Source of the DNA: Hypanus sabinus
Taxonomy: Eukaryota
DNA: 64,000 nt
Direction: 5' to 3'
Assembly (NCBI RefSeq): GCF_030144855.1
Contig: NC_082725.1
Span: forward strand, 34,534,001-34,598,000
Under the pieces are notes generated by a model. It did not search any database, had not been told where the DNA came from, and was given only the letters and a program-made list of their open reading frames with translations. Below are positions 1 to 52,420 of this stretch, in pieces; position 1 is the first letter of the stretch, and each line of letters opens with the position of its first letter. The position numbers were made by a program, and so were the translations under genes.

Positions 1-1357
1 GACAAGAAATGAAAGGTGACAAGCAGGAAAGTAGAGGTAAAGTGTCAATCAAACTGACTTCAGTCATAATTAGTGATGAAACAATCACAGAGATCAAATT
101 TCCAGCATCTAGAGAATCTCATGCTTAGACATTTCAAAAGTTAGGATAGCCTATTCCTGCTCATATTTCTACTGCTCTCTACCTCTGCCACCTCGGAGTT
201 ATTTTTGTTCACTTTAAAAAGAATGTGGTCAACAAAATCAACCTTTAAGCACTGAATCATATAAAATACCAGAACTATTTACAATTACTTGACCTACCCC
301 ATGCTGTGACTGAGGCCAGTTAAACATTAACACAACACTTAACAACAATCCAGCCTATATTAATATGATACACTGACTTTGAAGAGTAGAAAAACACTAC
401 AATGGATGCATCCTTCATCCATCAGCAAATTGGGCACTTTGACATACACAAGGACCATCACTATCCCTTTCTTTCTTTTGTTTCATTCTGATCTAGCTTA
501 GTTATAGATACCAATAATTTCTCAGAAGTACTCCACATTAAAAGAAAAGTAAAGGAACAGATTTATGGTGAGACACTTCAACTTCTTGGCAGTTATTCAT
601 TAATGTCATTGAGCGATTCCTGTATCAGAGTGTAGAGAATTCTATCCCGAGTCAAAGCCTACAAACGATACCTCCCAGTATAGATCAATTGATGATTGGT
701 GCCTAAACCAGAAACTTCAATGGTTTTCATTTGTGCCAACACATCAAGACCAATCTGGTATAATCTTTTCTTTATCATCACATTAAAAACAATCAAAATC
801 AAGAAAAAGACTTTTATCTAACAATGTTCTAATCATCTTAAATGCATAATTTGGCAAATATTGGAAAAATCCTTGGAGAGGTCAACCTACAGATAGCAAT
901 AAGCACAAAGGCATTAATAGATAGGTAGAGGAACTTAGGAAGAAAGTAAGGAATGCAAATCTTAAACAGTTAGACACTTTCACATAATGGGCAAAAATAA
1001 AGCGAAAGGAACAAAGAGGATTGCAATGAGAGAATTTTAAACTGATGGTATTGGGTAAACTTGGAATAAACTGCAAGCAAAAACCAGAATAAACTGTTTG
1101 CAGAGCAGAGGTGGAAATGAGAACAATTTCAGTACACTAAAGACCAGAGATTGAAGAATGCAAGGCTGGCTAAACAGTTAAAATCTGTAGCTTATAAAAA
1201 GGCAGCGATAGAAGATTCAGCAATTGTAGAGACAAAAGTTACACAGATTTATCTAGATGACGAATGTGACGGAATGAATATGGGTTTGGAACCTGTCCTG
1301 CAAGGCTCAGAAATGCAAAATCTGCTGTTCAGTTCAACCCAGGTCACTGGACAGGAT

Positions 1358-2384
1358 AAACACAAGAGATCCTGCAGATGCTGGAAATCCAAAGTGAAAT
1401 ACACAAAATACTGGAGGAACTCAGCAGGTCAGACAGCATCTATGAAAACGAATAAACAGTCAATGTTTCTGGCTGATACGCTTCAAAAAGGCCAGAAATG
1501 AAAGGGGAAGGAGCAAGAATAAGGTGTTTTTTTTTTGGGGGGGGGGGGAAGGAAAGCAGGACAACCGAGAAGGTGATAGGTAAAGTAAGGTGGGTGGGAA
1601 AGAGGTATGAAATAAGATGCTGGGAGGTGACATGTGGCAAAGGCGAGCAGCTGGAGAAGAATTCATCTGATAGGAGAGGAGAGTGGATTACAGGAGAAGA
1701 GGCAGGAGGAAACGGGCGGAGGCTACCTAGGCTGAATACGAGGTGTTGTTCCTCCAACCGGAGCATGGCCTCATCACGCTGAAGCCCATGGACCGACATT
1801 TCTGAATAGTAACAGGGGAAATAAAAATGGTTGGCCACTGGGAAGCTTTGCATTTTGTGGATAGAGCTGAGTTGCATAAAAAGAGGTCCCCCAATCTGTA
1901 TCGAGTCCAACCAATTCAGAGGAGGACACACTCGAAGCACTGGATACAGAAGATAGCCCCAACAGATTCTGCCTCACCTGGATGACTGTTTAGGGTCCTG
2001 AATAGAGGTGAGAGAGGAGGTGAATGGGCAGGAGAAGGACTTCTGCCACATGCAGGGATAAAAGCCAATAAGGAGAATAGTGGAAAGGAGCAAATGGACA
2101 AGGAAATCATGGAGGGAGAAATCACTACAGAAGATGGAGGAGGGAGTGTGGGGGCAGGAGGGGTTAGTAAATGTGTGTTTGGTATCGGGTCCCGTTGAAG
2201 ATGGTGGAAGTTGTAGAGAAAGGCGTGTTGCATTTGGAGACTCATGGGGTACTATGTAAGGACAAAAGGAACTCTCTCTGTTAAGGCAGCAGTAAGATAG
2301 GTCTCAGCCCAAAATGTCAACTGTACATTTTCCCATAGATGCTGCCTGGCCTGCTGAGTTCCTCCATCATTTTGGGTCTGTTGC
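1358..2384 (-). mobile_element. Penelope-like element (Neptune-type), 5'-truncated: RT C-terminus/linker plus GIY-YIG endonuclease remnant, 3' terminal repeat at left and inverted terminal repeat at right
   Basis: Minus-strand translations give RVPFVLT*YPMSLQMQHAFLYNFHHLQRDP, ESVGAIFCIQC and FPVANHF...MSVHGLQRDEAMLRLEEQHLVFSLGSL, matching the PLE linker/GIY-YIG pattern. The terminal repeat 'acacaagaga..gctggaggaactcagcagg' at 1358-1490 recurs inverted at ~2300-2384. Confidence 0.88.
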
Positions 2385-2739
2385 CTGCAGATCCACTTTA
2401 ATTTTGTTTGTCCAAAGAATGTTTCCAGTCCTCAGGTACAGGCACCCCCTTTCAGCACTCTGATGACCATTTCCTGCCCCCAAATTTCAAACTGCCAAAG
2501 TCTAACATAAACTCCCAATGAAACCTCTCGCCCCAATCTTTCAACTGAGGTCCAAAATATCTCACTTGTACTCAGACCAGCTACAACCTGAAGAGTAACC
2601 TTAAGCCTTCTGCATTGGCCACTGTGTGGATTTCTATTTCATTTCTGTCATCATAGATCTGTTGGCTCTCTCACTTAATGAAAGCAGCAGCCTTCCACAT
2701 GAACATTCAGTGCTACAGAGAAGGCATTGCCATCTACAT

Positions 2740-2817
2740 CAGGGGTTCCCTACCCCTTATGCTGAGGATCAATACCACTAAGCAAGGCGACCGCGGATCC
2801 CAGTTTGGGAACCCCCA
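2740..2817. mobile_element. Short hAT/Charlie-like MITE (~78 bp)
   Basis: Terminal inverted repeats CAGGGGTTCCC ... GGGAACCCC(ca), typical of hAT MITEs. TSD not clear. Confidence 0.6.
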
Positions 2818-3189
2818 CCTACTTTCAAGATGATAAACATCCTCTCCCTCAGCAATGAGCCATTCAGTACAGGAAAAAAAAACATTTTGCATCTTCACAG
2901 CCTTTCAGACTCTAAATTACAGGAATTCAGCTTCTTTTCAGTAATCAAACGGTTGTTGATTGTTTAGATGGAACAAAATAAAATTAAAATGCCACTCATA
3001 TGATCAGTTTGGTTTTTGCAACAAACATCTGATGGTTTATATTTACTTCTAAAAATATTTGTGATGTTGTAACTGATTATTTAAATATCCAGGCAAGGCA
3101 CTTACCCTTAGAAATTGCATAGAAAAAGTCTATCAGGCAAATAATCAATGTTTCTTCAGAGCATTCCTTTCTCTATTACTCTTTACAGT

Positions 3190-3680
3190 CGCTCTTTATG
3201 AACGGACTGAGTATGTGTGGCTGTGCTCCTCAAATGCAGATGAAAGGTGTTTCCCATATTTGGAGGTTTATGTGATTATAGGACTGTACTTTATATCGGA
3301 TTCCTTCAGTTTTCAGTGTTTTCTTTCCTATAGACGATCGGCCGGTGGATGACCTGTTAATTTTTTTGTGTGTAAGGGTGGTGGTTGTGGGTTTGGTGCT
3401 ACTGTCTTTTCTATGAGTGAAGGGGTTGCGGGTAGTTATAGGTGGGGGGGGGGGGGGTCATTCATTTTTATTGTGGATGTTTTTTCTGTGGACAACGGGT
3501 GTTTTGACGGTCAGTGAGTTTTGTTTCTTTTCTTTTTCATGCTGGTTGGGGCAGAGTTGATGTCTTTTCCTTTATCATTATCCATGGTCTTTCTGTATTT
3601 AATGGGTATCTAGAGTAGACAAACATCAGAGTTGTATCGTATATGCACGGCCTGACAATTAAACAAAACCTCTGAACCTT
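3190..3680 (+). mobile_element. Non-coding retroposon fragment with Rex1/Babar-like 3' tail
   Basis: Ends 'catcagagttgtat...gacaattaaa..ctctgaacct', resembling the tail of the Rex1-like LINE at 9590-9651. GT-rich body, no ORF. 5' boundary approximate. Confidence 0.5.
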
Positions 3681-7621: not shown

Positions 7622-9651
7622 CATCTGAATGACTACACCAGGGTTGTAACAGGTTTATTAAAACATTGGTATATGAGTGTGCCCCCACAAAATCATTCAG
7701 TGTTCACTTCAATCAGAAACTCTGGATGAACCATGAAATCCAGAATTTGTTGTAGGTCAAACAAAACTGAAATCTGAAATCTGGATTGAAATCTGGAGAT
7801 CAAGAATGCTACAAGAGGTGCAAGTATGATCTCCAGAAAGCCATCTCACAGGTGATTCCAGACCTGTTTGGAATCAATGAGGAATGCTCATGGGAGGGTT
7901 TGAATGCTATAACCTCCTACAAAATTAAATCTAGTGACTTGGGAGACATCAGAGATTTGCTTCCAGACAAGCTCAATGCCTTCTATGCTTGTTTTGATCA
8001 TCAGAATATTAACGATTTATTGTGAACCCCCACATCTCCCAATGATCCTTTATCTCAGTATCTGAAGCTGACATGCAGGCTGCCTTCAGGAGGGTGGACC
8101 CAAGGAAGTCTGGACAGGGGATCTGGCCATGTGCTAAAGACCTTTGGTGATCAACTGGCTGGTGTGTTCACTGACATCTTTAACCTTTCGCTTTGGTAAA
8201 GTGTGATACACATCTGTTTCAAGCAGGCCGCAATCACACTGGTGCTCTGGAAGAGCCTCAATGACCCTCACCCAGATGCACTTACATCCACAGTGAAGAA
8301 GTGGTTTCAGAGGTTAGTGTTGAAACATATCAGAATCTGTCTGAGTGGTGACTTGGATCCATTCCAATTTGCCCACCAAAACAAAAGGCTCACAGCAGAT
8401 GCCATCTCATTGGCTCGTCACACAACCCTGTAACATCTGGACAGAAAAATGCATACATCTGCATGCTCTTTATTGATTGCAGCTCAGCATTTAATACAAT
8501 CATCCCCTCAAAACTAGTCAGTAAACTCTAAGCCTGGGTCTCAATACCCACTTTTGCAATTGGATCCTCAATTTCCTTACTTGCAAAGCCCAGTCAGTTC
8601 AGATTGGCAAAACATTTCCTTCACAATCTCCATCTGCACAGATGCACCACAGGGACGTGTGCATTCGACCCCTCTTCTATTTGCTTTACACCTATGACTG
8701 TGAGGCTAAGCAGAGCTCCAACGCATATTCCAATTCACTGATGACACCACTGTTGTGGACCATGTCAAGAGTGGTGATGAATCAGCTGAGAAGAGGGAGA
8801 TTGAGGATATGACCGAATGGTGTCATAACAACAGCCTCTCACTCATTGTCAGCAAGACCAAGGAACTGAATGTAGACTTCAGGAGAGGGAAACCAGAGGT
8901 CCATGAGGTGTAATCCTCAGAGGATCAGAGGTGAAAAGGGTCAGTAACTTTAAATTCCTGGGTGCCACCATCTCAGTGGATCTGTCCTGGATCAATCATA
9001 TAACTGTAATTGCAAAGAAAGTACGACAACCCCTCTACTTCTTTCAGGGTCTGTGGAGATTCAGAACGTCAAAAACCTTGACAAACATCTATAGATATGT
9101 GGTGGAAAGTGTATTAACTGGCTGCATTATGGCCTGGTATGGAAACATCAATGCCTTTGAGCAGAAAATTATACAAAAGTAGTGGAGTTGGCCCAGTTCA
9201 TCATGGGTAAAGCCCAACCAACCATTGAGCACACCTACATAAAACATTGCAGCAGAAAAGCAGCATCCAGAGCTCCTCACCAGCCAGGCCATGCCCTTTT
9301 CCTGCTGCTGCCATCAGGCAAAGGTACAAGTGCCTCAGGATTCTCACCACCAGGCTCAAGAACAGTTACTACCCTTCAACCACCAGGCTCTTGAAAAGAG
9401 GATGACTATGTGCATTATATTTCTGGTGTTCCCACAACCAATGATCTTACTTCAAGGACTCTTTAGTTTGTTATTTCCTGCTCTCATTATTTATTGCTAT
9501 TTACTTATTTCTGCATTTGCAGTTTGTTGTTCACTGATCCTGTTTACAGTTACTCTTCTACCAATTGGCTAAGTATACCCACAGGAAAAATAAGCTCAGG
9601 GTTGTATGTGGTGACCTGTATGTACTCTGATTATAAAATTTTGACCTTTGA
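7622..9651 (+). mobile_element. Rex1/Babar-clade LINE, 5'-truncated, decayed RT ORF
   Basis: Fragments LNDYTRVVT, GLNAITSYK, LPDKLNAFYACFD, ALTSTVKKWFQRLVLKHI, LDPFQFAH..TADAISLA, FKFLG..DLSW, HQPGHALFLLLPSG, with many stops and frameshifts. 3' tail 'ctcagggttgtat...tttgacctttga'. Confidence 0.9.
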
Positions 9652-9840: not shown

Positions 9841-11439
9841 GGTTTGAATTTGAGGTATGATTACAGAATATAATCCAGTCAAATATTATCATATTTAGGT
9901 AAAGACAAATCAAAACCAAGGTTCTTGGCAACAGATACATCCACAAGTTCTTGCGCTGGGAAAAGTTACTACTACCTCCTCTTAGTTTGTTTTCATTCTA
10001 ATAGATCAGATTTTCCCAAGCTTGTGATTCACAAACTTGGAAAACAAATTATTAATGACTGTTTTGATATAAATAATACTCAAGAGGTAATATTTCCAGT
10101 TCCTTGAAGAGTTGAAGTCCATCTGCTGGGAAAGTGACAAAGGCAACTTCTGTCATGATGTATCCTACTGTTATATTTCTTGCATAAGATAATGTCAGAA
10201 TGTGAATAAGAAGATTGTGACTTGGAAAACTTACATATTTCACAATTTATTATAGAATGACAGCATACAAAAAATCGGGATATGGGCAACATTTAAAGCA
10301 TACTTTCAAGATACCATTTATGTAGATTACAAATCAGTGTCTAAAAACTTTTTTTATGATAAAGATGGTGGTTGCTGTGAATTGACAAAGGTCATCAACA
10401 GATTTCTTGATCTGTGACTCCAGTACTGTTGCTGGTTTCTAAACTCAGTGAGGTGGGGAAGGTGGGTGCAGGAAGTAAGGAAGGCATAACCAGGTAACCC
10501 AGGTATTGGTTATTCTTCCCTTTCTTCTATCCCACGAATGGATCAGTATACAACTGCCAACATGATTATCCATCTTACAGAGGTAATGTGGGTGAAATGC
10601 ACTTCTTGGGTTTTAACAGGATTGAACTACAATTACTTCTTTAGCAAGAATACCCAAATTTCATGAATTCTTTTTAAGTGCAAATCACAAGATCAATTAA
10701 AGGAACAAATTATGGACATTACTGAATTTTGATTAGTCTTTTTCAAGGACAATTTCTGAAACCTGCTTTACACAACCAGACATGTTCTTTGCTCAGCAAA
10801 ATCCAAAGTGGAAAGGAACGTGCAGCAATGCTAATCAAAAGGACCACAGAGAAAAGCACCAAAAGAGGACCTCAGCACTGTAATACTGATACTTCCTTTG
10901 CAGGCCAAGATTAATGGGTCAATTACAGCTAATTCCCTGTACGCCTTTGTGCATAAAGCCTTTAGCAGACATGCAAGTTTAAATTACTTGACTTCTGTTC
11001 AGAACTTTTCCAATAGCTCGACAAATTTCTGAATACATTAGAAACAGCTGACAATAGCCTAGAATATAAGTGTATAATCAAAAAATCTTTCTTTCACCCC
11101 CCCCCCCCAAAATCGGCAGCAAATCTTCTGCAATTCGCGGGACAGAGGGACAGAAGAGGGTGAAAAATCCACTGAGACAGAGTTGAAGGCAAGGAAAGGG
11201 AGCATTAGGAGACCTAGGGAGGGAGGACTGAATTATGGGAAAGGTGAGTTGGTCATTAGAGAAATTACAAGGTAAACATGCTGTAGAACAGCTGTGGAAG
11301 TAAGCCAGCACTTTCATTTTCCTGTGTTGACTGGGTCTTTCTTTGTAAAACAGTAAACAAAGATGGCAACTAAATCTATTTTTCCCATCATTCTCAGCAT
11401 GGCCATATCGACAAAAATAGTAGCAGGAAGAAAGGGAGA

Positions 11440-19049: not shown

Positions 19050-19240
19050 TCCAAGTATTTTGTGTTGTCACTCTTCAAGTATAGCAGGTAGAGGGCTCAG
19101 CTTACGCAATTGCTCCTAATATGACAAACCTAGCTTCTCTGAAACAGGTCTGATGAAACTTCAATGCACTCCTTTGTAAGCAATGCGTCCTTCTTTAGAC
19201 AAGAAAACTGCACACAATATTCGAGGTGGGATCCCACAAC
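19050..19240 (-). mobile_element. CR1 LINE fragment
   Basis: 'aactgcacacaatattcgaggtggg' is the reverse complement of the CR1 RT 'PHLEYCVQF' motif. Confidence 0.6.
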
Positions 19241-19254
19241 GAAGAATTGTTAAG

Positions 19255-20454
19255 AGGCAATTGTTAGCACAAGGAGGTAATGTCAGACCAAACTGGAATC
19301 ACAGATGGATGCTCAATACCTGAGGCAGGGTACAATACAACTTCCTACAAGGCGAGATCAGGTAGTATAAGTGAAAATGACCCTTCACTCCTAGATGAGC
19401 TCAATGCTTTTTATGCATTTTTAATAGAGCTATGGCACAGCTACATGAGCCCCCACAACTCCAGATGCATCTATAATTTCTGTCTGTGGCAGAGGGCGAA
19501 TCCATGAAAGGCATCTGGTCTGGACAGTGTACCAAGTTGAGTATCTTAATATTGTGTGCTTAGCTCCTTGCTCCACTCTCTATAGACAGGTGACCATGTA
19601 ACTAAACTCAACTCTAATGCCACCTTCAAATTTGCTGATGACACTACTGTTGAGTGATTCATGAGCAAGTTAAGACACCTGTTTCAGTGGTACCACAGCT
19701 AAAACCTTTCAGTCAGCTTCAGCAAAACTAAAGAGTTGATTGTTGACTTCAGGGACTGGAGAGGGGACTTTGAAGGATTGGTGAGGGAGCGAGTCAGTAT
19801 GTTTATATTCTTGGGGGTTAACACATCAGTTGACCTGTCCTGGGCCCAGTACATAGATGTAATAAGGAAAGCATGACGGCATACTTACTTTCTTAGGAGA
19901 TTCAGATTGTCACTGAACACTCAAACACAATCCGACTGATGTACTGCTGTACGAATGTTGACTGATTGCTCCCAAGTAGCAGTACCAGGCCATGATACAA
20001 AGGAATTCAAACAACTGCAGAGAGCAGTGAACTTTGGCTAATACCTTTGGCACATTCCTTCCCACCATCTGTGGTATCTGCAGGATGCACTACCTCAGGA
20101 AGGCAACAATCCTCATTGAGTATTTCACCATCTTCTTACAGTTGCCATTGGATAGGAGCTACAGACGGCTCAAGAGCCAAGCCACCATGTTCAAGAACAA
20201 CTTCCCTTCAACCATTTGGTTCTTGAATCAACTGGCAAAACCAGAATCACTAGAGTTTAGCAACGCTTATAACCAATTTGCACTAAATAGACATTTTTGT
20301 TGTACTTGTTCTCTTTCTTATAAAAATTGTGTATAATTTATGTTTTTCTTATGAATGCCAATTATATGATGCTATGATACTGCTTTAAGTCTTCCATAAC
20401 ACCTGGGCATACATGTACCTGTGAATATAACAATAAAATCAACTTTCATTTTGA
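19255..20454 (+). mobile_element. Rex1/Babar-clade LINE, internally deleted
   Basis: SLLDELNAFYAF, FKFADDTTV (FADD catalytic motif), SKTKELIVDFR, LPLDRSYRRLK..TMFKNNF. Tail 'caataaaatcaactttcattttga'. Confidence 0.85.
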
Positions 20455-39615: not shown

Positions 39616-40245
39616 AATGCATTATTTCATTATTTCTATCTGGTACGGTCAGATGATTTGTTTAAAGGATGGCACCCCAAAATTTGTGTATAGTGCTAAG
39701 TGTTAAACTATTTTCTAACAAAGAAACAAGAGCATTGGTGATAGGACAGACTGAGGTGCTACCATATTGAACAAACACTCAAGAAAAATGCTCAGGATGT
39801 AACCAGTCATAATACCAGAGTAGTACCAGCCTTTCAAAACTGGTGGTTCAGTGCTATAACAAGTGGCCAGTGCAAGGGAATTCAGTAGAATTCTGTTAAT
39901 TTGGATACATCAAGGCCAGATATTTTGACCCAGTTAAACAGCTGTCCCAAATAGTCAAAGTTACATGAAAATAGTTAAAAAAAGACAAAGTACATTTTAC
40001 GGAGTAACAAACTATGAATGTAAATGATATACAGAATTTTAATACTAGTGTCAAAAAAAAATCACTGCTTTTTAATTTGCCATCAGTCTGCCCAAATGAA
40101 TAAATAACACAAATATATGCAACTGACGCTATTTAAAAATTGTTCATTCCAAGCATGGCATAGTGTCTAACAGTCATACAAGTACACATGACTAATGCTC
40201 GTTAGAACCTGTTCAGCAACAGTCTCCTGTTCCAATTAAATGACA

Positions 40246-41398
40246 CTAGACAACGGGGTGACCTGTTGGGGCACACTTTGAGAGAAGGGTAGTGCAGTCT
40301 GATGTGACCAGATGTGAACATTAAATTTTCCTGAATGCTATTGGTAATCACTGTGCTTTGGAAATTGAAGAAGAAAACCTCAGTTTATTAAAGAAGAACG
40401 ATGCGTAGCAAGGCAAATATAGCTCCTCCTCATTTAACGAAGGACATTTTTGATGGCAACATTTCTAGTTGATCTGCCACCCTTGTGTCTCTCGTTGTCA
40501 TTCTGGAGACGTGCAGCCTTTTCATCCACCGTCTGTTCATCTCTTCTGCTGTTTATTCTTTGTCACTGATCTTGGAGACGTGCATTTGTCAACTCCTTTG
40601 TCTCTTCCTCTCTCCTCCTCCTGTAACTGTTTTTGTAATTCTGGAGACGTGCAGCCCTTTCATCCCCCGTCTCTTCTTCTCTCATCTTCTTTTGTCATGA
40701 CTCTTTGAATCTGGAGTCGTGCTGACCTGGCCTCATCCAATTTTTGTACTCTCCCTCTCCTTGCCGCTTCCCGATGACGTTTGGCATCATCTCTTGACCA
40801 TAATGTCCCCCTTCTCTTTCCCCACAGCATAACTAAGCTGACCTTTTTTTTAACCCTAATGCTGGATAGAATATACGAAGCAGTAACACCAAGGCCTCCA
40901 GGATGCTAATTTTTCTTGATGATGTGGTTGCCGCTCTCCTAAATGGACGTGATATAGTGACTGCAGCAAAGGGTTTGATGGGTGTTTCGAAGTACGTCAT
41001 TACAATAAGTTTTAATTATCTCTTATTGATGGGTGGCAGTTAGATCTGTCCCAATCCTGCACGTGCTGACGGTGATTAGCAGAATGTGACTGCTCAAAAC
41101 AGAGCTGCCTTGCCCTTTTTCCCCGGTTGGTGTCACTCCTGAGGCTGGCTGTGGTCATGTGTTGTGGTGACACATCGCGGCTTCCATCAAGGCTGACATC
41201 AGCTCTCAGGTGAAAGCAGGGCTGTTGATTTTGGTGAGTGAGCAATTTTATACGAATATATAACCCTGAACTTTGCCTGCATTAAGTTAGCGCATTTTAA
41301 GTCTATTTAGCCAAAAATAGTGCCACTGTCATGCACCGCTTGCGCTAACTGGAGGTCACAAACAGACAAACAGAGCATGAGAGTTTTAGTAGTATATA
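40246..41398 (-). mobile_element. Non-autonomous Helitron (1153 bp)
   Basis: On the minus strand the 5' end is TaTATACTACTAAAACTC (TC-type start with one change), followed by (TGTTTGTC)-like repeats. The 3' end is a hairpin CAACAGG-TCAC-CCCGTTG, then T-CTAG. It sits between A and T of the host MITE (cactA|Tgtc) with no TSD. Confidence 0.85.
40434..40830 (-). pseudogene. Decayed ~131-aa ORF encoding four 23-aa STPR-like repeats inside the Helitron
   Basis: Manual translation: MLWGKRRGTLWSRDDAKRHREAARRGRVQ KLDEARSARLQIQRVMT/KKMREE ETGDERAARLQNYKNSYRRRREE ETKELTNARLQDQ*QRINSRRDE QTVDEKAARLQNDNERHKGGRST RNVAIKNVLR*. One +1 frameshift (~40690) and one TGA (~40563). GGAG(A/T)CGTGC recurs at 40505, 40574, 40643 and 40713. 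Confidence 0.8.
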
Positions 41399-41765
41399 TA
41401 GTGTCCCAAATAAATGAAAGAAATCTTGGCTACTTCCTCAATTAGTTTCTGTTCTTTAAGAAGTGACCCAAATGTATGTCTAGAGCAATCAACCAGAATC
41501 TATCGTACTAACAAAGTCTAGATGGGCAAGTCAGTGAACACATTGCAGACACACCAGCTCTTTGTACACAATTACTTGAACTAAAAAAAATTGTGATATG
41601 ACACCGAGTGAAAAGTAATCAGATCAAGACAAACCAAAGAATGTGCTTAAGGCCACAGATCCAAGTTGCCAGAGAGTCTGACAACAACTTTTCAGATTGA
41701 ATGAGAGTAGTGATAAAACTCTCAGTTTGTATAAGGAACATGGATGGTCACATTTGTAGGTACAT

Positions 41766-42735: not shown

Positions 42736-43485
42736 CAGTGGACTCTGGTTAATTGGGGCAGTCACTTATTTGGGACAATGCTTAAAGAACAAAAACTAAT
42801 CCAGAAAATTCCAGGATTCCCTTTGTTTACTTGGGACATTATGCCGCTTAATTGGAACAGGTGACTGTTGCTGTTAGTTGCTCACACTTGTGTGGCTGTT
42901 AGATGCTACACCATGCTTAGAGCGAACAGCTTTTAAAAAGCATCAGTTATGTGAATTTGTATTCAAAAACCAGTGACCTTAGTCACTGATTATTGGCAAG
43001 AAATAAGCAGCGAGACAATTCCAATCTGTTTTGTTCACTGCTGTTTCAAGCAATTAGCTGAGTGATGCCAGAAAAAGATGGGGGTGAAAACTAAATGATT
43101 TCACTACTTCAAGTTAGGAACTATGAGGTATTTCAAGGTATCAGCAATAATCTTCAATGTTACAATAAAAATACAGATTTGGACAATAACATTATGTGAA
43201 TGCAGTCCATTATCTCCACTGAGTGTCTGTGCTGAATTTGTTCATTACACATACTGGATAAATTCCTCTGTCGATAACTCTTAGGAGCTATACAGTTTTA
43301 TAGTAATGTAGTACTATTGGTGGTGTTTGAATTTGTTCTGTATTTCATTTAAATACATAGCTTGTTTATCCTTCAATACATTTTTTAAAAAACTATTTCC
43401 ATGAAACCTTGCCTAATTTTAGCATCCGCTTAACTGGGCCAAAATGAACTGGTCCCAAAGTGCCCTGATTAACTGGAGTCCCCTG
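42736..43485 (+). mobile_element. Tigger/pogo-like MITE, 750 bp, 25-bp TIRs, TA TSD
   Basis: TA|CAGTGGACTCTGGTTAATTGGGGCA ... TGCCCTGATTAACTGGAGTCCCCTG|TA (20/25 match; four of the five mismatches are consistent with CpG decay). Confidence 0.9.
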
Positions 43486-45264: not shown

Positions 45265-47089
45265 ACTGAGAGCACATCTACAAGGAGTGCTCTGCAGGAA
45301 AGCAGCATTCATCAAGGACATCTAGGTCATGCTCTCTTCTCACTGCTGCCATCAAGGAGGAGATGCAGGAGTTTCAGGACCCACACCATCAGATTCAGTA
45401 ACAGGCAATACCCCTCAACCGTCAGGCTCTTGAACCAGACATGCTAACTTCACTCACCCCAATACTGAACTGTGCCCTTAACATCTGGACTCACTTTCAC
45501 GGACACTTCAACTCATGTTCTCAATACTTATTGCTTATTTATTGTTATTATTTTGTTTTTATTTTCTTTTTGCTTTTGTTGTCTTTGCACAATTGAATAA
45601 TGCGGGCTGCATTAATGACTATCGTCCGGTAGCACTCACATCAACATGAAATGCTTTGAGAGGTTGGTCATGACTAGACTGAACTCCTGCCTCAGCAAGG
45701 ACCTGGACCAATAGCAATTTGTCTATCACCACAATAGGTCAATGGCAGACAGTCTCAATGGCTCTTCACACGGTTTTAGACCACCTGGACAACACAAACA
45801 CCTACATCAGGATGCTGTTCATCGACTATAGCTCAGCATTTAATATCATTCCCACAATCCTGACTGAGAAGTTGCAGAACCTCAGCTCTGTACCTCTCTC
45901 TGCAATTGGATCCTCGACTTCCTAACTGGAAGGCCACAAACTGCGGATTGGTGATAACATATCCTCCTCACTGATGATCAACACTGGCTCACTTCAGAAG
46001 TGTGTGCTTAGACCTCTGCTCTCTATATACACATGAATGTGTGGCTAGGCATAGATCAAATACCATCTACAAATTTGCTAATGATATACCCATTGTTGGT
46101 AGAATTGCAGGTGGTGGCAAGAGGGCATACAGGAGTGAGATATGCCAACTAGTGGAGTGGTGTCGCAGCAACAACCTGGCACTCAACGTCAGTAAGACAA
46201 AAGAGCTGCTAGTGGACTTCAGGAAGGGTAAGACGAAGGAACACCTACCAATCCTCAGAGGGATCAGAAGTGGAGAGAGTGAGCAGCAGTTCCTGGGTGC
46301 CAAGATCTCTGAGGATCTAACCTGGTCCCAACATATCGGTGTAGTTATAAAAGAGGCAAGGCAGCAGCTGTACTTTATTAGGAGTTTGAAGAGATTTGGC
46401 ATGTCAACAAATACACTCAAAAACTTCTATAGCTGTACCATGAAGAGCATTCTGACAGCTGCGTCACTGCCTGGTATGGAGGGGCTACTGTACAGGACTG
46501 AAAGAAGCTGCAGAAGGTTGTAAATCTAGTCAGCTCCATTTTGGGCACTAGCCTACAAAGTACCCAGGACATCTTCATGGAACAGTGTCTCAGAAAGGCA
46601 GTGTCCATTATTAATGACCTCCAGCACCCAGGGTGTGCCCTTTTCTCACTGTTACCATCAGGTAGGAGGCACACACTCAGTGATTCAGGAACAGCATCTT
46701 CCTCTCTGCCATCCGATTCCTAAATGGACATTGAACCCTTGGACACTACTTCACATCTTTTTAAAAAGTAGTGTTATTGTTTTTTTAAAAAATATATGTA
46801 ATTGATTTACTTGTTTATTTTTATTGTTTATTATTATATTTATTATTTTCTACACTAGATTATATATTGCATTGAACCACTGCTGCTAAGTTAACAAATT
46901 TCACATCACATGGCAGTGATAATAAAATTGATTCTGACTCTGACAATTGATTGTCCATTTCTTGTGCAATTTTTCACTGATTCTATTGAGTTTCTTTGTA
47001 TTTACTATGAATGCCTGCAAGAAAATCAATTTCAGCATAGTATATCATGACATATATGTAAATTGCTAATGTTTACTTCGAACTTTGAA
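45265..47089 (+). mobile_element. Rex1/Babar LINE 3' end (outer element; 45265-45596 and 46951-47089)
   Basis: HALFSLLPSRRRCRSFRTHTIRF, then 3' UTR. The UTR resumes after 46950 and ends 'ttcgaactttgaa'. Confidence 0.8.
45597..46942 (+). mobile_element. Rex1/Babar LINE, 5'-truncated, nested in the outer element with 8-bp TSD ACAATTGA
   Basis: [73 protein letters not shown]. Tail 'aataaaattgattctgactctg'. ACAATTGA at 45589-45596 and 46943-46950. Confidence 0.92.
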
Positions 47090-50869: not shown

Positions 50870-50964
50870 TGCTTCTTCCTATAGATGCTGCCTGACCTGC
50901 TGCGTTCCACCAGCATTTTGTGCGTGTTGCTTGTACTTCCAGCATCTGCAGATTTCCTCGTGAT
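50839..50964 (+). mobile_element. Solo Penelope-like terminal repeat inserted into the Tigger 5' region, 6-bp TSD TGTGCT
   Basis: TGTGCT at 50833-50838 and 50965-50970. The body matches the PLE terminal repeat and retains many CpGs (young copy). Confidence 0.88.
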
Positions 50965-52420
50965 TGTGCTTTATCTCAATTTATTTTGTGTGTTTGTTAG
51001 CAAGACGAGTTCGAAGGTATCAGAAAAGCCTAAAAGAGCTCATAAGGGTGTTACACTTAGTGTAAAATTAGACATAATTAAGTTTTTCAATCGTGGTGAA
51101 CAAACTAAGAACATTGTCTGTGCGTTGAACCATTCGCACTATTTATACGCAGAGAGAAAGAATCTTGAAAGCTGCGATGTTACTGTAGGTTCTCCTGACA
51201 AAGTGGTCTCTCTTAGCTGGCAACCAATAATGGATAAAATGGAAAGTCTATTGCTTGAGTGGATTGATGGGTGTACAAAGCATGGTGTTCTGTTAAGTTA
51301 TCTTATACTAAAGGAGAAATTAGTCAGTCTTTTTAATAAGCTGAAACAGAAAGCACTGGACAATGGTGAAAGTGTTGCAAAAGTGGAATTTAAAAGTAAT
51401 CGGTTTCTGAGGAGTGGGCAGTTTCATAGCTTAAAGTTTACTGGAGAGAGTGCTTCAGCTGATACTGAAGCTGCCAAAAAGTTCCCAATAGAACTGAAGA
51501 AAATAATTACAGAAGGTGTTTATTCATCTAAGCAAGTGTTTAACTGTGATGAAACTGCAATTTATTGGAAAAATTTGCCAAGCACCCCAACCTCCGACGA
51601 CTCAGCCTAACACACCATCATCAGTGTGCTCGCTGTCTTCGGTAAGTGAAACTATTCTGTAATATTATTTCTACTTTATATAGGCTGTGTATTTTTGTGT
51701 TATTTGGTTTGTTTGGGCAACTCCATAGCTTTAAGGTTACTGGAGAGAGTGCTGCCGAGAGTGCTTGCGTGAAATTTTCACTACGTTAGACAGTGCTGCA
51801 ATGATTGCAGAAAAGTATTTCTACTTTATATAGGTTGCGTATTTACCATATCTTTCCTGCTTTTACTATATGTTACTGTTATTTTAGGTTTTATGTATTA
51901 TTTGGCATGATTTGGGAGGTTTTTTTTGGGTTTGGGAATGCTCACAGATTTTTCCCATATAAATAAATGGTAATTGCTTCTTCACTTTTACAACATTGAG
52001 CTTACAAACCGTTTCATAGGAATGCTCCACCTTCGATAGCGAGAGAAACCTGTGTACAAAAAAAATGTCTGTTTACATATAAAATTAGATTAGCATAATT
52101 GGAGAAGCTGTTCAGTTAAGTATCAGCTACACCTTTTTTAAAAAACAGCATGAAGAATGTGTAATGGTGAGACACCCATGTCTTTTACTTTTCTACAAAG
52201 CTTAGTACTAAACTGAAAAGCTTTCTATGATCAGTCTTGATTAAAACACAATTGGCAGTGTGACATTTAATCTAATTATTTTAGTCAATGCTATGACTTC
52301 TCATCATCTTAAATTTAAGTGTTTATCAGAGCATGTTTACGAATTTGCAAATTTTTAACAGTATTTTCCTTTATGTATTATAACCTTCATTGATAGGAAA
52401 AGTTGAAGATGGAACTCTTC

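Follow-up and report, generated by a model that had tools for sequence, protein, structure and literature searches.

We found that the minus strand of positions 40246-41398 in a 64,000-nucleotide stretch of the genome of the ray Hypanus sabinus (NCBI RefSeq assembly GCF_030144855.1, contig NC_082725.1, positions 34,534,001 to 34,598,000 of the forward strand; the whole stretch is called the window below, and positions are counted from its first letter) is a 1153-bp copy of a high-copy, non-autonomous Helitron-type element, and that the broken open reading frame (ORF) hidden in it is a relic stub, not a working micro-gene. Four tandem 23-residue repeats encoded by this ORF are, to judge from their sequence, related to the STPR repeats of DNA-binding proteins and would have formed the N-terminal part of a longer protein. 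We consider it probable that the element is an old and neutrally decaying copy of a high-copy non-autonomous batoid Helitron, and that its coding block is the stub of an ancestral Helitron protein gene. An earlier note on this DNA, made from the letters alone, had described the same block as a stand-alone micro-gene for an STPR microprotein of 131 residues; what it had observed, the assignment to a Helitron, the STPR identity and the N-terminal placement all held, and the stand-alone micro-gene did not.

The ends of the element were defined by its insertion site. The flanks at 40121-40239 and 41398-41500 both matched a single uninterrupted paralogue of the surrounding host repeat on the minus strand (42948-42741, with the empty site at 42848/42842). 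Comparison of the empty site (..ACATTA|TGCC..) with the filled one (..ACACTA[element]TGTCATT..) showed that the element had inserted between A and T and that no target site had been duplicated. We then placed Logan contigs, taken from four runs and as many organisms, on positions 40200-41450, with 859-3372 contigs per run; the four runs contained thousands of copies of the element. Contigs of the host repeat joined 40239 to 41398 without it. Loose contig ends, AT-rich and with an agreement of only 0.42-0.47, fell exactly at 40245 and 41398, the low agreement indicating many different insertion sites. The 5'-terminal block (TATACTACTAAAACTCTCAT..., 41338-41396, minus strand) was common with the 5' ends of snake Helitrons, sharing 77% identity over 65 columns with positions 8979-9043 of the Crotalus locus L003. 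The 3'-terminal block (..GACTGCACTACCCTTCTCTCAAA..CCCAACAGGTCACCCCGTTGTCTAG, 40246-40302, minus strand) was 75% identical over 57 nt to positions 10359-10415 of snake locus L007 and ended in CTAG (40249-40246), thus carrying the CTRR 3' end, which in the snake homologues reads CTAG, CTAA or CTGG. The subterminal 3' hairpin, which Helitrons have about 10 nt ahead of CTRR, folds weakly in the window copy (-2.7 kcal/mol, z -1.04), and at the same position the snake copies have a perfect palindrome, TGACCCA-A-TGGGTCA. No inverted repeats of at least 14 nt were found within the element. The insertion at A|T, the empty site, the 3' end in CTAG and the large number of copies, whose flanks are unrelated to one another, led us to class the element as a non-autonomous Helitron whose 5' terminus is a variant one, in line with the Helitron recognised in the earlier note.

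The host repeat around the Helitron (40100-40245 and 41399-41520) was itself very abundant, with a summed contig depth of about 8,000-33,000 across the four runs, and many uninterrupted copies of it were seen as 40239-to-41398 joints. Within the element, the summed contig depth at 41124-41207 was 20- to 50-fold below that of the rest in all four runs, and one contig had 40 other letters in place of 41136-41219; the segment at 41124-41207 is probably specific to a subfamily.

The repeats are marked by the 10-mer GGAG[AT]CGTGC, which, as described in the earlier note, lies at 40505, 40574, 40643 and 40713; a scan of both strands of the window gave no other match. The unit steps of 69, 69 and 70 nt correspond to 23-residue tandem units, the 70-nt step being caused by a frameshift base, and units 2 and 4, which lie 138 nt (2x69) apart, shared 79% identity over 72 nt. 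On the minus strand the units are distributed over three ORF pieces, which, like the stop codon and the hexamer behind them, agree with the description in the earlier note. Specifically, piece 1 (40663-40830, 56 residues, MLWGKRR...) holds the basic N-terminus and repeat 1, ends at an out-of-frame TGA and aligned with residues 1-56 of the snake proteins P0002-P0004; an A-run at 40691-40694 has one extra base relative to the snake homologues (a +1 frameshift), the sole gap in the blastn and MAFFT alignments; piece 2 (40566-40685, 40 residues, +1 frame) holds repeat 2 and most of repeat 3; an in-frame TGA follows at 40563-40565; and piece 3 (40437-40562, 42 residues) holds the remainder of repeat 3, repeat 4 and then 15 unrelated codons. 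The TAA stop (40434-40436) lies 48 nt past the breakpoint of homology, and a putative AATAAA hexamer (40384-40389), 44 nt 3' of the TAA, was absent among the family differences listed.

Aligned with the snake relatives (alignment A2), the three pieces tile residues 1-116 of longer proteins in collinear order, which places the repeats in the N-terminal part of such a protein; by this comparison the pieces of 56, 40 and 42 residues are one ancestral frame with four 23-residue repeats. At the nucleotide level, the STPR block at 40484-40867 (minus strand), made up of a 39-nt leader and codons 1-116 of the ancestral ORF, was 72.8-74.4% identical to exon 1 of the snake loci L001, L002, L003 and L006, with a single 1-nt gap. 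The block of the family majority, by which we mean a sequence put together from the differences with the best support among assembled contigs, where rare variants are lost, was 74-76% identical to snake exon 1. Both lesions that had been postulated, the extra base in the A-run and the TGA, are real when the window is compared with its homologues, and only their explanation has to be amended: the TGA, proposed to come from CGA, corresponds to AGA in the family majority and in all snake homologues, and the extra base is not peculiar to this copy, being found in the family majority as well. The suggestion that the N-terminus had originally read MPRGKRR was confirmed by the Thamnophis protein P0003, which begins exactly so.

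The relationship to STPR emerged from profiles and not from single-sequence searches. Pfam gave no match for the three pieces even at E 10. With phmmer, the 40-residue piece ranked FMBP-1 at the top of the PDB with an E of 4.8 only and retrieved P0001 and P0002 only from 1.84 billion proteins; a word search with one of these two returned a small snake set (P0002-P0007) and distant STPR proteins. The A2 profile had FMBP-1 (5d23) as its sole match in the PDB (E 6.6e-4), in register over 83 residues, and matched 25 proteins in a large protein collection, 24 of them with Pfam STPRs in precomputed annotation and the last, P0022, with 20 bits on STPR rescanning. The intact snake relatives themselves scored 14.3-26.8 bits on Pfam STPRs (PF21107), below the gathering cut-off of 27 bits. 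A custom hidden Markov model (HMM) of Pfam-positive STPR proteins gave 34.1 bits for the read-through of the window with X at both breaks, a score reached by none of 2000 composition-preserving shuffles (best, 3.9 bits), and hhalign to STPR gave 95.5% with the window by itself and 98% with the snake set. The residues conserved in STPR units are Glu1, Thr/Ser2 and Arg9, plus Arg6 and Leu10 (PMC4856987); units 2-4 read ET..ER.ARL, ET.....ARL and QT..EK.ARL in the window and ET..ER.ARL, ET...R.ARL and ET..ER.ARL in the family majority, in which unit 1 reads ES.E.R.ARL. By these measures the repeats are a divergent but genuine STPR-type relative lying below the Pfam cut-off, and the identity suggested in the earlier note is supported by the custom HMM and by the match of the A2 profile to FMBP-1, at scores under the Pfam threshold itself.

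FMBP-1 of Bombyx (PDB 5d23, 5d2q and 5d2s; PMC4856987) and the ZNF821-type proteins likewise have four tandem 23-residue units with the same five residues. The window differs from FMBP-1 in the second half of the unit, which is rich in Arg and Glu (..QNDKNSHRRRREE), whereas BmSTPR has a Met/Ser/Tyr/Ala pattern of DNA contacts, and in that its repeats do not belong to a cellular gene. STPR domains bind AT-rich DNA along its major groove; any DNA binding here is predicted from sequence. Another parallel is offered by the HELIANO survey (Nucleic Acids Res 2024, PMC11417382), in which STPRs are a stable companion domain of HLE1 Helitrons. There too, rolling-circle elements of the Helitron type are associated with STPR repeats, and the position of the repeats with respect to the transposase gene is conserved. 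The survey covers autonomous elements, however, whereas ours is a 1.15-kb RepHel-less element, cut after repeat 4 and frameshifted family-wide, with repeats so divergent that their closest intact relatives reach 14-26.8 bits against a cut-off of 27.

Other ray-family copies with ORFs of 72-236 residues were not present among the 8000 candidates listed by a profile search, which returned distant STPR proteins only. In one of the distant relatives, P0028, the STPR repeats share an ORF with a possible start of DUF6570 (weak, 14 bits), and in another, P0036, with a Rep-like Y..KY..K stretch recognised by eye and without confirmation by Pfam. The genomic context of distant STPR ORFs was examined on the ENA contigs L004 and L005. 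L004 carries a strong STPR ORF at 10001-10666 (82.5 bits) and, 9 kb downstream on the same strand, a weak Helitron_like_N ORF at 19107-19430, which is not decisive.

The state of the family and of this copy argues that the block is no longer a gene. The nucleotide alignment with the snake exons begins at 40867, 39 nt ahead of the ATG, and breaks off abruptly at 40484, just after ..ERHK; the last 15 codons and the TAA therefore derive from unrelated DNA past this junction, and in other family members the same 3' tail is joined at 40484 to different DNA. The change of 40565 from A to T on the plus strand, by which the minus strand reads AGA in place of TGA, accounted for about 98-100% of the depth in all four runs, and because the family depth is near-unanimous for AGA the TGA is private to the window copy. 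No majority indel was found in 40662-40712 in the four runs; since the window copy and the family majority both have the extra A-run base relative to the snakes, the family was amplified with the frameshift. Compared with the family majority, the window copy had 13 non-synonymous and four synonymous changes (omega, the dN/dS ratio of non-synonymous to synonymous substitution rates, 0.82), and its private changes, among those listed, numbered 22 in the 384 nt of the STPR block, 14 in the 531 nt of the 5' part and four in the 238 nt of the tail. The window copy is thus drifting neutrally. The earlier note had itself named a closed consensus ORF as a ground for rejecting its micro-gene, and that ORF is closed by a frameshift that persists in the family majority; together with the C-terminus and TAA past the junction and the omega of 0.82, this leaves a stand-alone 131-residue microprotein with its own stop unsupported.

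The close homologues of the block are NCBI gene models of Ahaetulla, Thamnophis, Crotalus tigris, C. adamanteus, Pantherophis and Pseudonaja. For example, Ahaetulla XP_058029734 is annotated as 'RNA-binding protein 25-like' and the C. tigris model as 'zinc finger CCCH domain-containing protein 13-like'. The Thamnophis (L002) and Crotalus (L003) loci were collinear over about 20 kb. Exon 1 (175 codons) had a dN/dS of 0.22-0.25 in three pairwise comparisons, with flanking DNA only 74-79% identical; exon 2 had a dN/dS of 0.47, the splice sites were canonical and conserved, and in Pseudonaja the exon-1 ORF was intact, as one tblastn segment of 174 residues. Crotalus and Pantherophis also share a conserved tandem paralogue that has no more than one or two repeats.

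In every snake locus, exon 1 lies within a short Helitron-like unit and exon 2 outside it; such units were delimited at L003 8979-10608, L003 21248-24769 and L007 7379-10415. The 5' end of the snake unit (TATACTACTCAAACTCTCAT...) was 77% identical to the first 60 nt of the window element and directly follows the 3' end of another Helitron, a hairpin (TGACCCAATGGGTCA) plus CTAG or CTAA, forming tail-to-head junctions at L003 8979, L003 21248, L002 ~33424, L006 25587 and L007 7379. The last 57 nt of the window element have their homologue about 85-95 nt past the splice donor of the snake exon, in a block that ends in GTTGTCTAG/CTGG|TTT; this block was found just after exon 1 in all six loci (L003 10608, L003 24769, L007 10415, L002 10625, L006 10255 and L001 764). 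From these alignments, the ray and snake elements share three blocks, namely the 5' end, the STPR block and the 3' end, and the DNA between them is unrelated. A comparison of the window with 58 kb of snake DNA revealed no shared repeat besides the STPR block. Read through its splice donor, the snake ORF gains about 70 more codons (..AETEKKRED..GAM(A/S)KVCPHC..) and ends immediately ahead of the 3' block. By these 70 or so codons the snake stub exceeds the ray stub, indicating different breakpoints, which fits independent truncations of a longer ancestral gene. The stretch ..MAKVCPHCRAGL.. in P0001 was rejected as proof of a RepHel zinc-finger motif, being read-through of this kind; it was conserved in three snake loci, and its hhalign match to ..QKCTTCSERF.. 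of distant relatives, of low confidence, is kept as a hint.

Starting from the observed boundaries, insertion site, STPR homology, breakpoint, family-wide frameshift and neutral drift of this copy, we propose the following history. Between its 5' terminal region and its 3' tail of 238 bp, which ends in CTAG, the element would have a block of 384 bp that represents the start of an ancestral Helitron protein gene: 39 nt of leader, then 116 codons for a basic, MPRGKRR-type N-terminus and the four STPR repeats. The remainder of the gene would have been lost at the junction near 40484, leaving a coding stub whose apparent stop and C-terminus were supplied by unrelated DNA. The family would have been amplified after the +1 frameshift between repeats 1 and 2, leaving most copies unable to encode the 131 residues, and the window copy would later have gained its TGA. 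The element may have originated by internal deletion of an autonomous parent and may have been mobilised in trans by a RepHel recognising the conserved termini.

Several observations weigh against this history. The canonical 5'-TC is absent: the element starts with TATATACT, the family boundary at 41398 gives 5'-TATATACTACT, and the snake 5' junctions read CTAG|TATACTACT. A 5' TC is typical of Helitrons and not universal, and TATACTA, the motif that usually follows it, is present at the 5' end of the element; we treated this end as a variant Helitron terminus, probable from its sequence, and because the TC is absent the Helitron assignment rests on the remaining features. A cognate autonomous RepHel with this N-terminus was not found, phmmer giving two snake-type proteins only, and a search of the Crotalus unit for Rep or helicase remnants yielded only a reverse-transcriptase (RT) fragment of a long interspersed nuclear element (LINE); since neither an autonomous partner nor a Rep/helicase remnant was found, we infer the descent from RepHel indirectly. 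In HELIANO (PMC11417382), moreover, STPRs mostly lie in an ORF separate from RepHel. In run X2 only, a 1-nt deletion at 40689 (three contigs, 20.8 of 129.8 depth, about 16%) would restore the ancestral frame; it may reflect an in-frame subfamily or homopolymer noise. In the +1 frame the family majority is open for 118 codons (MMPNV..., 40437-40790, minus strand), covering repeats 2-4 up to the same TAA, a frame that the window copy breaks with a TGA where the majority has GGA (40697). Finally, intact copies may exist, since Logan contigs under-report rare variants.

Some of these points would fit a micro-gene at the level of the family, that is, a short Helitron lineage with a self-standing STPR ORF whose product binds DNA, for instance the AT-rich ends of Helitrons, and regulates RepHel or competes with it, the window copy being a dead member. 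We regard this as unlikely. It can draw on the 118-codon ORF kept by the majority, with AGA instead of TGA, on the in-frame share of X2 and on the placement of STPRs apart from RepHel in the survey, and also on the layout of 5' end, STPR ORF and 3' end without RepHel, which recurs in both the batoid and the snakes with unrelated DNA between, and on a dN/dS of 0.25-0.33 between the family majority and the snake exon. Contigs of the element occur in RNA-labelled runs, and BmSTPR has a preference for AT-rich units of 4 bp, for instance (atac)n and (tata)n (PMC4856987), which might be linked to the 5' end of the element (TATATACTACTAAAA). However, the frameshift in most copies of all four runs indicates that amplification did not need the ORF; the C-terminus and the stop lie beyond the junction; selection at the level of the host, on the snake branch, can account for the low dN/dS; the private changes are densest in the STPR block among the differences listed; and presence in RNA libraries does not show transcription.

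Capture of a host gene, in which a Helitron would have taken up part of the first exon of a host STPR gene and the block would never have been a transposon gene, is more doubtful still. Helitrons of maize and bats do capture host gene fragments, the only close relatives of the block are annotated cellular snake genes under purifying selection, and the block, with its start 39 nt ahead of the ATG and its end within the exon, looks like an arbitrary captured piece. Yet the snake exon itself lies between Helitron 5' and 3' ends homologous to those of the window element, and no batoid protein resembling the STPR block was found in the searched database, which includes batoid proteomes. The synonymous divergence (dS) between the ray family majority and the snake exon was 0.58-0.75, less than twice the 0.41 between two snake families, and this misfits vertical orthology over the approximately 450 million years since cartilaginous fishes and tetrapods diverged. 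A periodicity arising by chance in purine-rich DNA, without coding ancestry, would be compatible with the empty Pfam result for the three pieces and with the GA-rich composition of the region, since such DNA has long open frames by chance, but we give it next to no credence: no shuffle came near the HMM score, and the collinear homology to proteins of six snake loci and the profile match to FMBP-1 refute it. The stub of an ancestral Helitron protein gene is the reading that we retain.

A dS too low for vertical descent, together with the lack of a batoid protein, suggests a horizontal spread of the Helitron lineage, a process well documented for Helitrons (PMC2997563), and the comparison as a whole points to such spread followed by exaptation in snakes. 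More specifically, the STPR ORF may be a long-lived module of a short RepHel-less Helitron lineage, carried horizontally into batoids and snakes and exapted in colubroids as an STPR transcription-factor gene; we hold the chances of this fuller scenario to be about even. According to it, the STPR ORF of the element would have become exon 1, with a splice donor about 85 nt before the 3' end of the element, and would have been joined to a downstream host exon, with purifying selection in Colubridae and Viperidae, an intact exon-1 ORF in an elapid and a tandem paralogue. The idea in the earlier note that such elements could be raw material for new transcription factors would thereby gain a concrete candidate in the conserved, spliced exon 1 of snakes.

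Heligloria, Helisimi and related families (Thomas et al. 2010, PMC2997563) are likewise known as short non-autonomous copies, patchily distributed across distant animals including reptiles, with an autonomous partner often not found. Our element is set beside these named families by description, and it differs in that ray-snake identity is only about 75%, in three blocks only, which indicates an old link rather than a recent transfer. The host-transposase fusions of Cosby et al. (bioRxiv 10.1101/2020.05.07.082677) resemble the snake case, in which exon 1 and its splice donor likewise come from the DNA-binding ORF of a transposon and are followed by a spliced-on exon further downstream; the end of that second exon, by eye, resembles the start of a SCAN box. 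In contrast to these fusions, the donor here would be an accessory or N-terminal STPR module of a Helitron and not a cut-and-paste transposase domain, and the likeness concerns the snake loci only, not the window. That preprint mentions Helitrons 0 times, and our search of the literature on batoid Helitrons and Helitron-derived fusion genes yielded nothing specific. The window feature is therefore best seen as a decayed addition to a known association of STPRs with Helitrons, and the snake fusion gene as the more novel lead.

Elsewhere in the window, the plus strand at 46002-46523 encodes a C-terminal fragment of a LINE RT (173 residues), with best matches in Pristis pectinata and Mobula birostris (65-69% identical), in keeping with a batoid genome and against an origin of the window in a snake that had captured a gene of its own host. 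A 241-residue ORF at 50885-51610 on the plus strand resembles, by eye, the N-terminal part of a pogo/Tigger-type transposase, and had no Pfam match at E 0.01. A scan for sigma-70 promoters and terminators gave no match; its models are bacterial and irrelevant for a eukaryote.

For the annotation of the ray genome, the hidden ORF represents real ancestry and not a live gene, and should not be counted as a new coding gene. For the Helitrons, the data suggest that divergent STPR repeats belong to the coding repertoire of a vertebrate lineage, close to its 5' end, a point of interest for how the AT-rich ends of Helitrons might be located by RepHel or an accessory protein. They also link a ray transposon to snake genes now mis-named RBM25-like or ZC3H13-like. 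If the exaptation is true, a Helitron-derived STPR gene would be a class not reported among vertebrate host-transposase fusions, and the snake loci would offer a testable case of a Helitron-borne, predicted DNA-binding domain in a host gene, as well as of an old connection, through Helitrons, between cartilaginous fishes and squamates.

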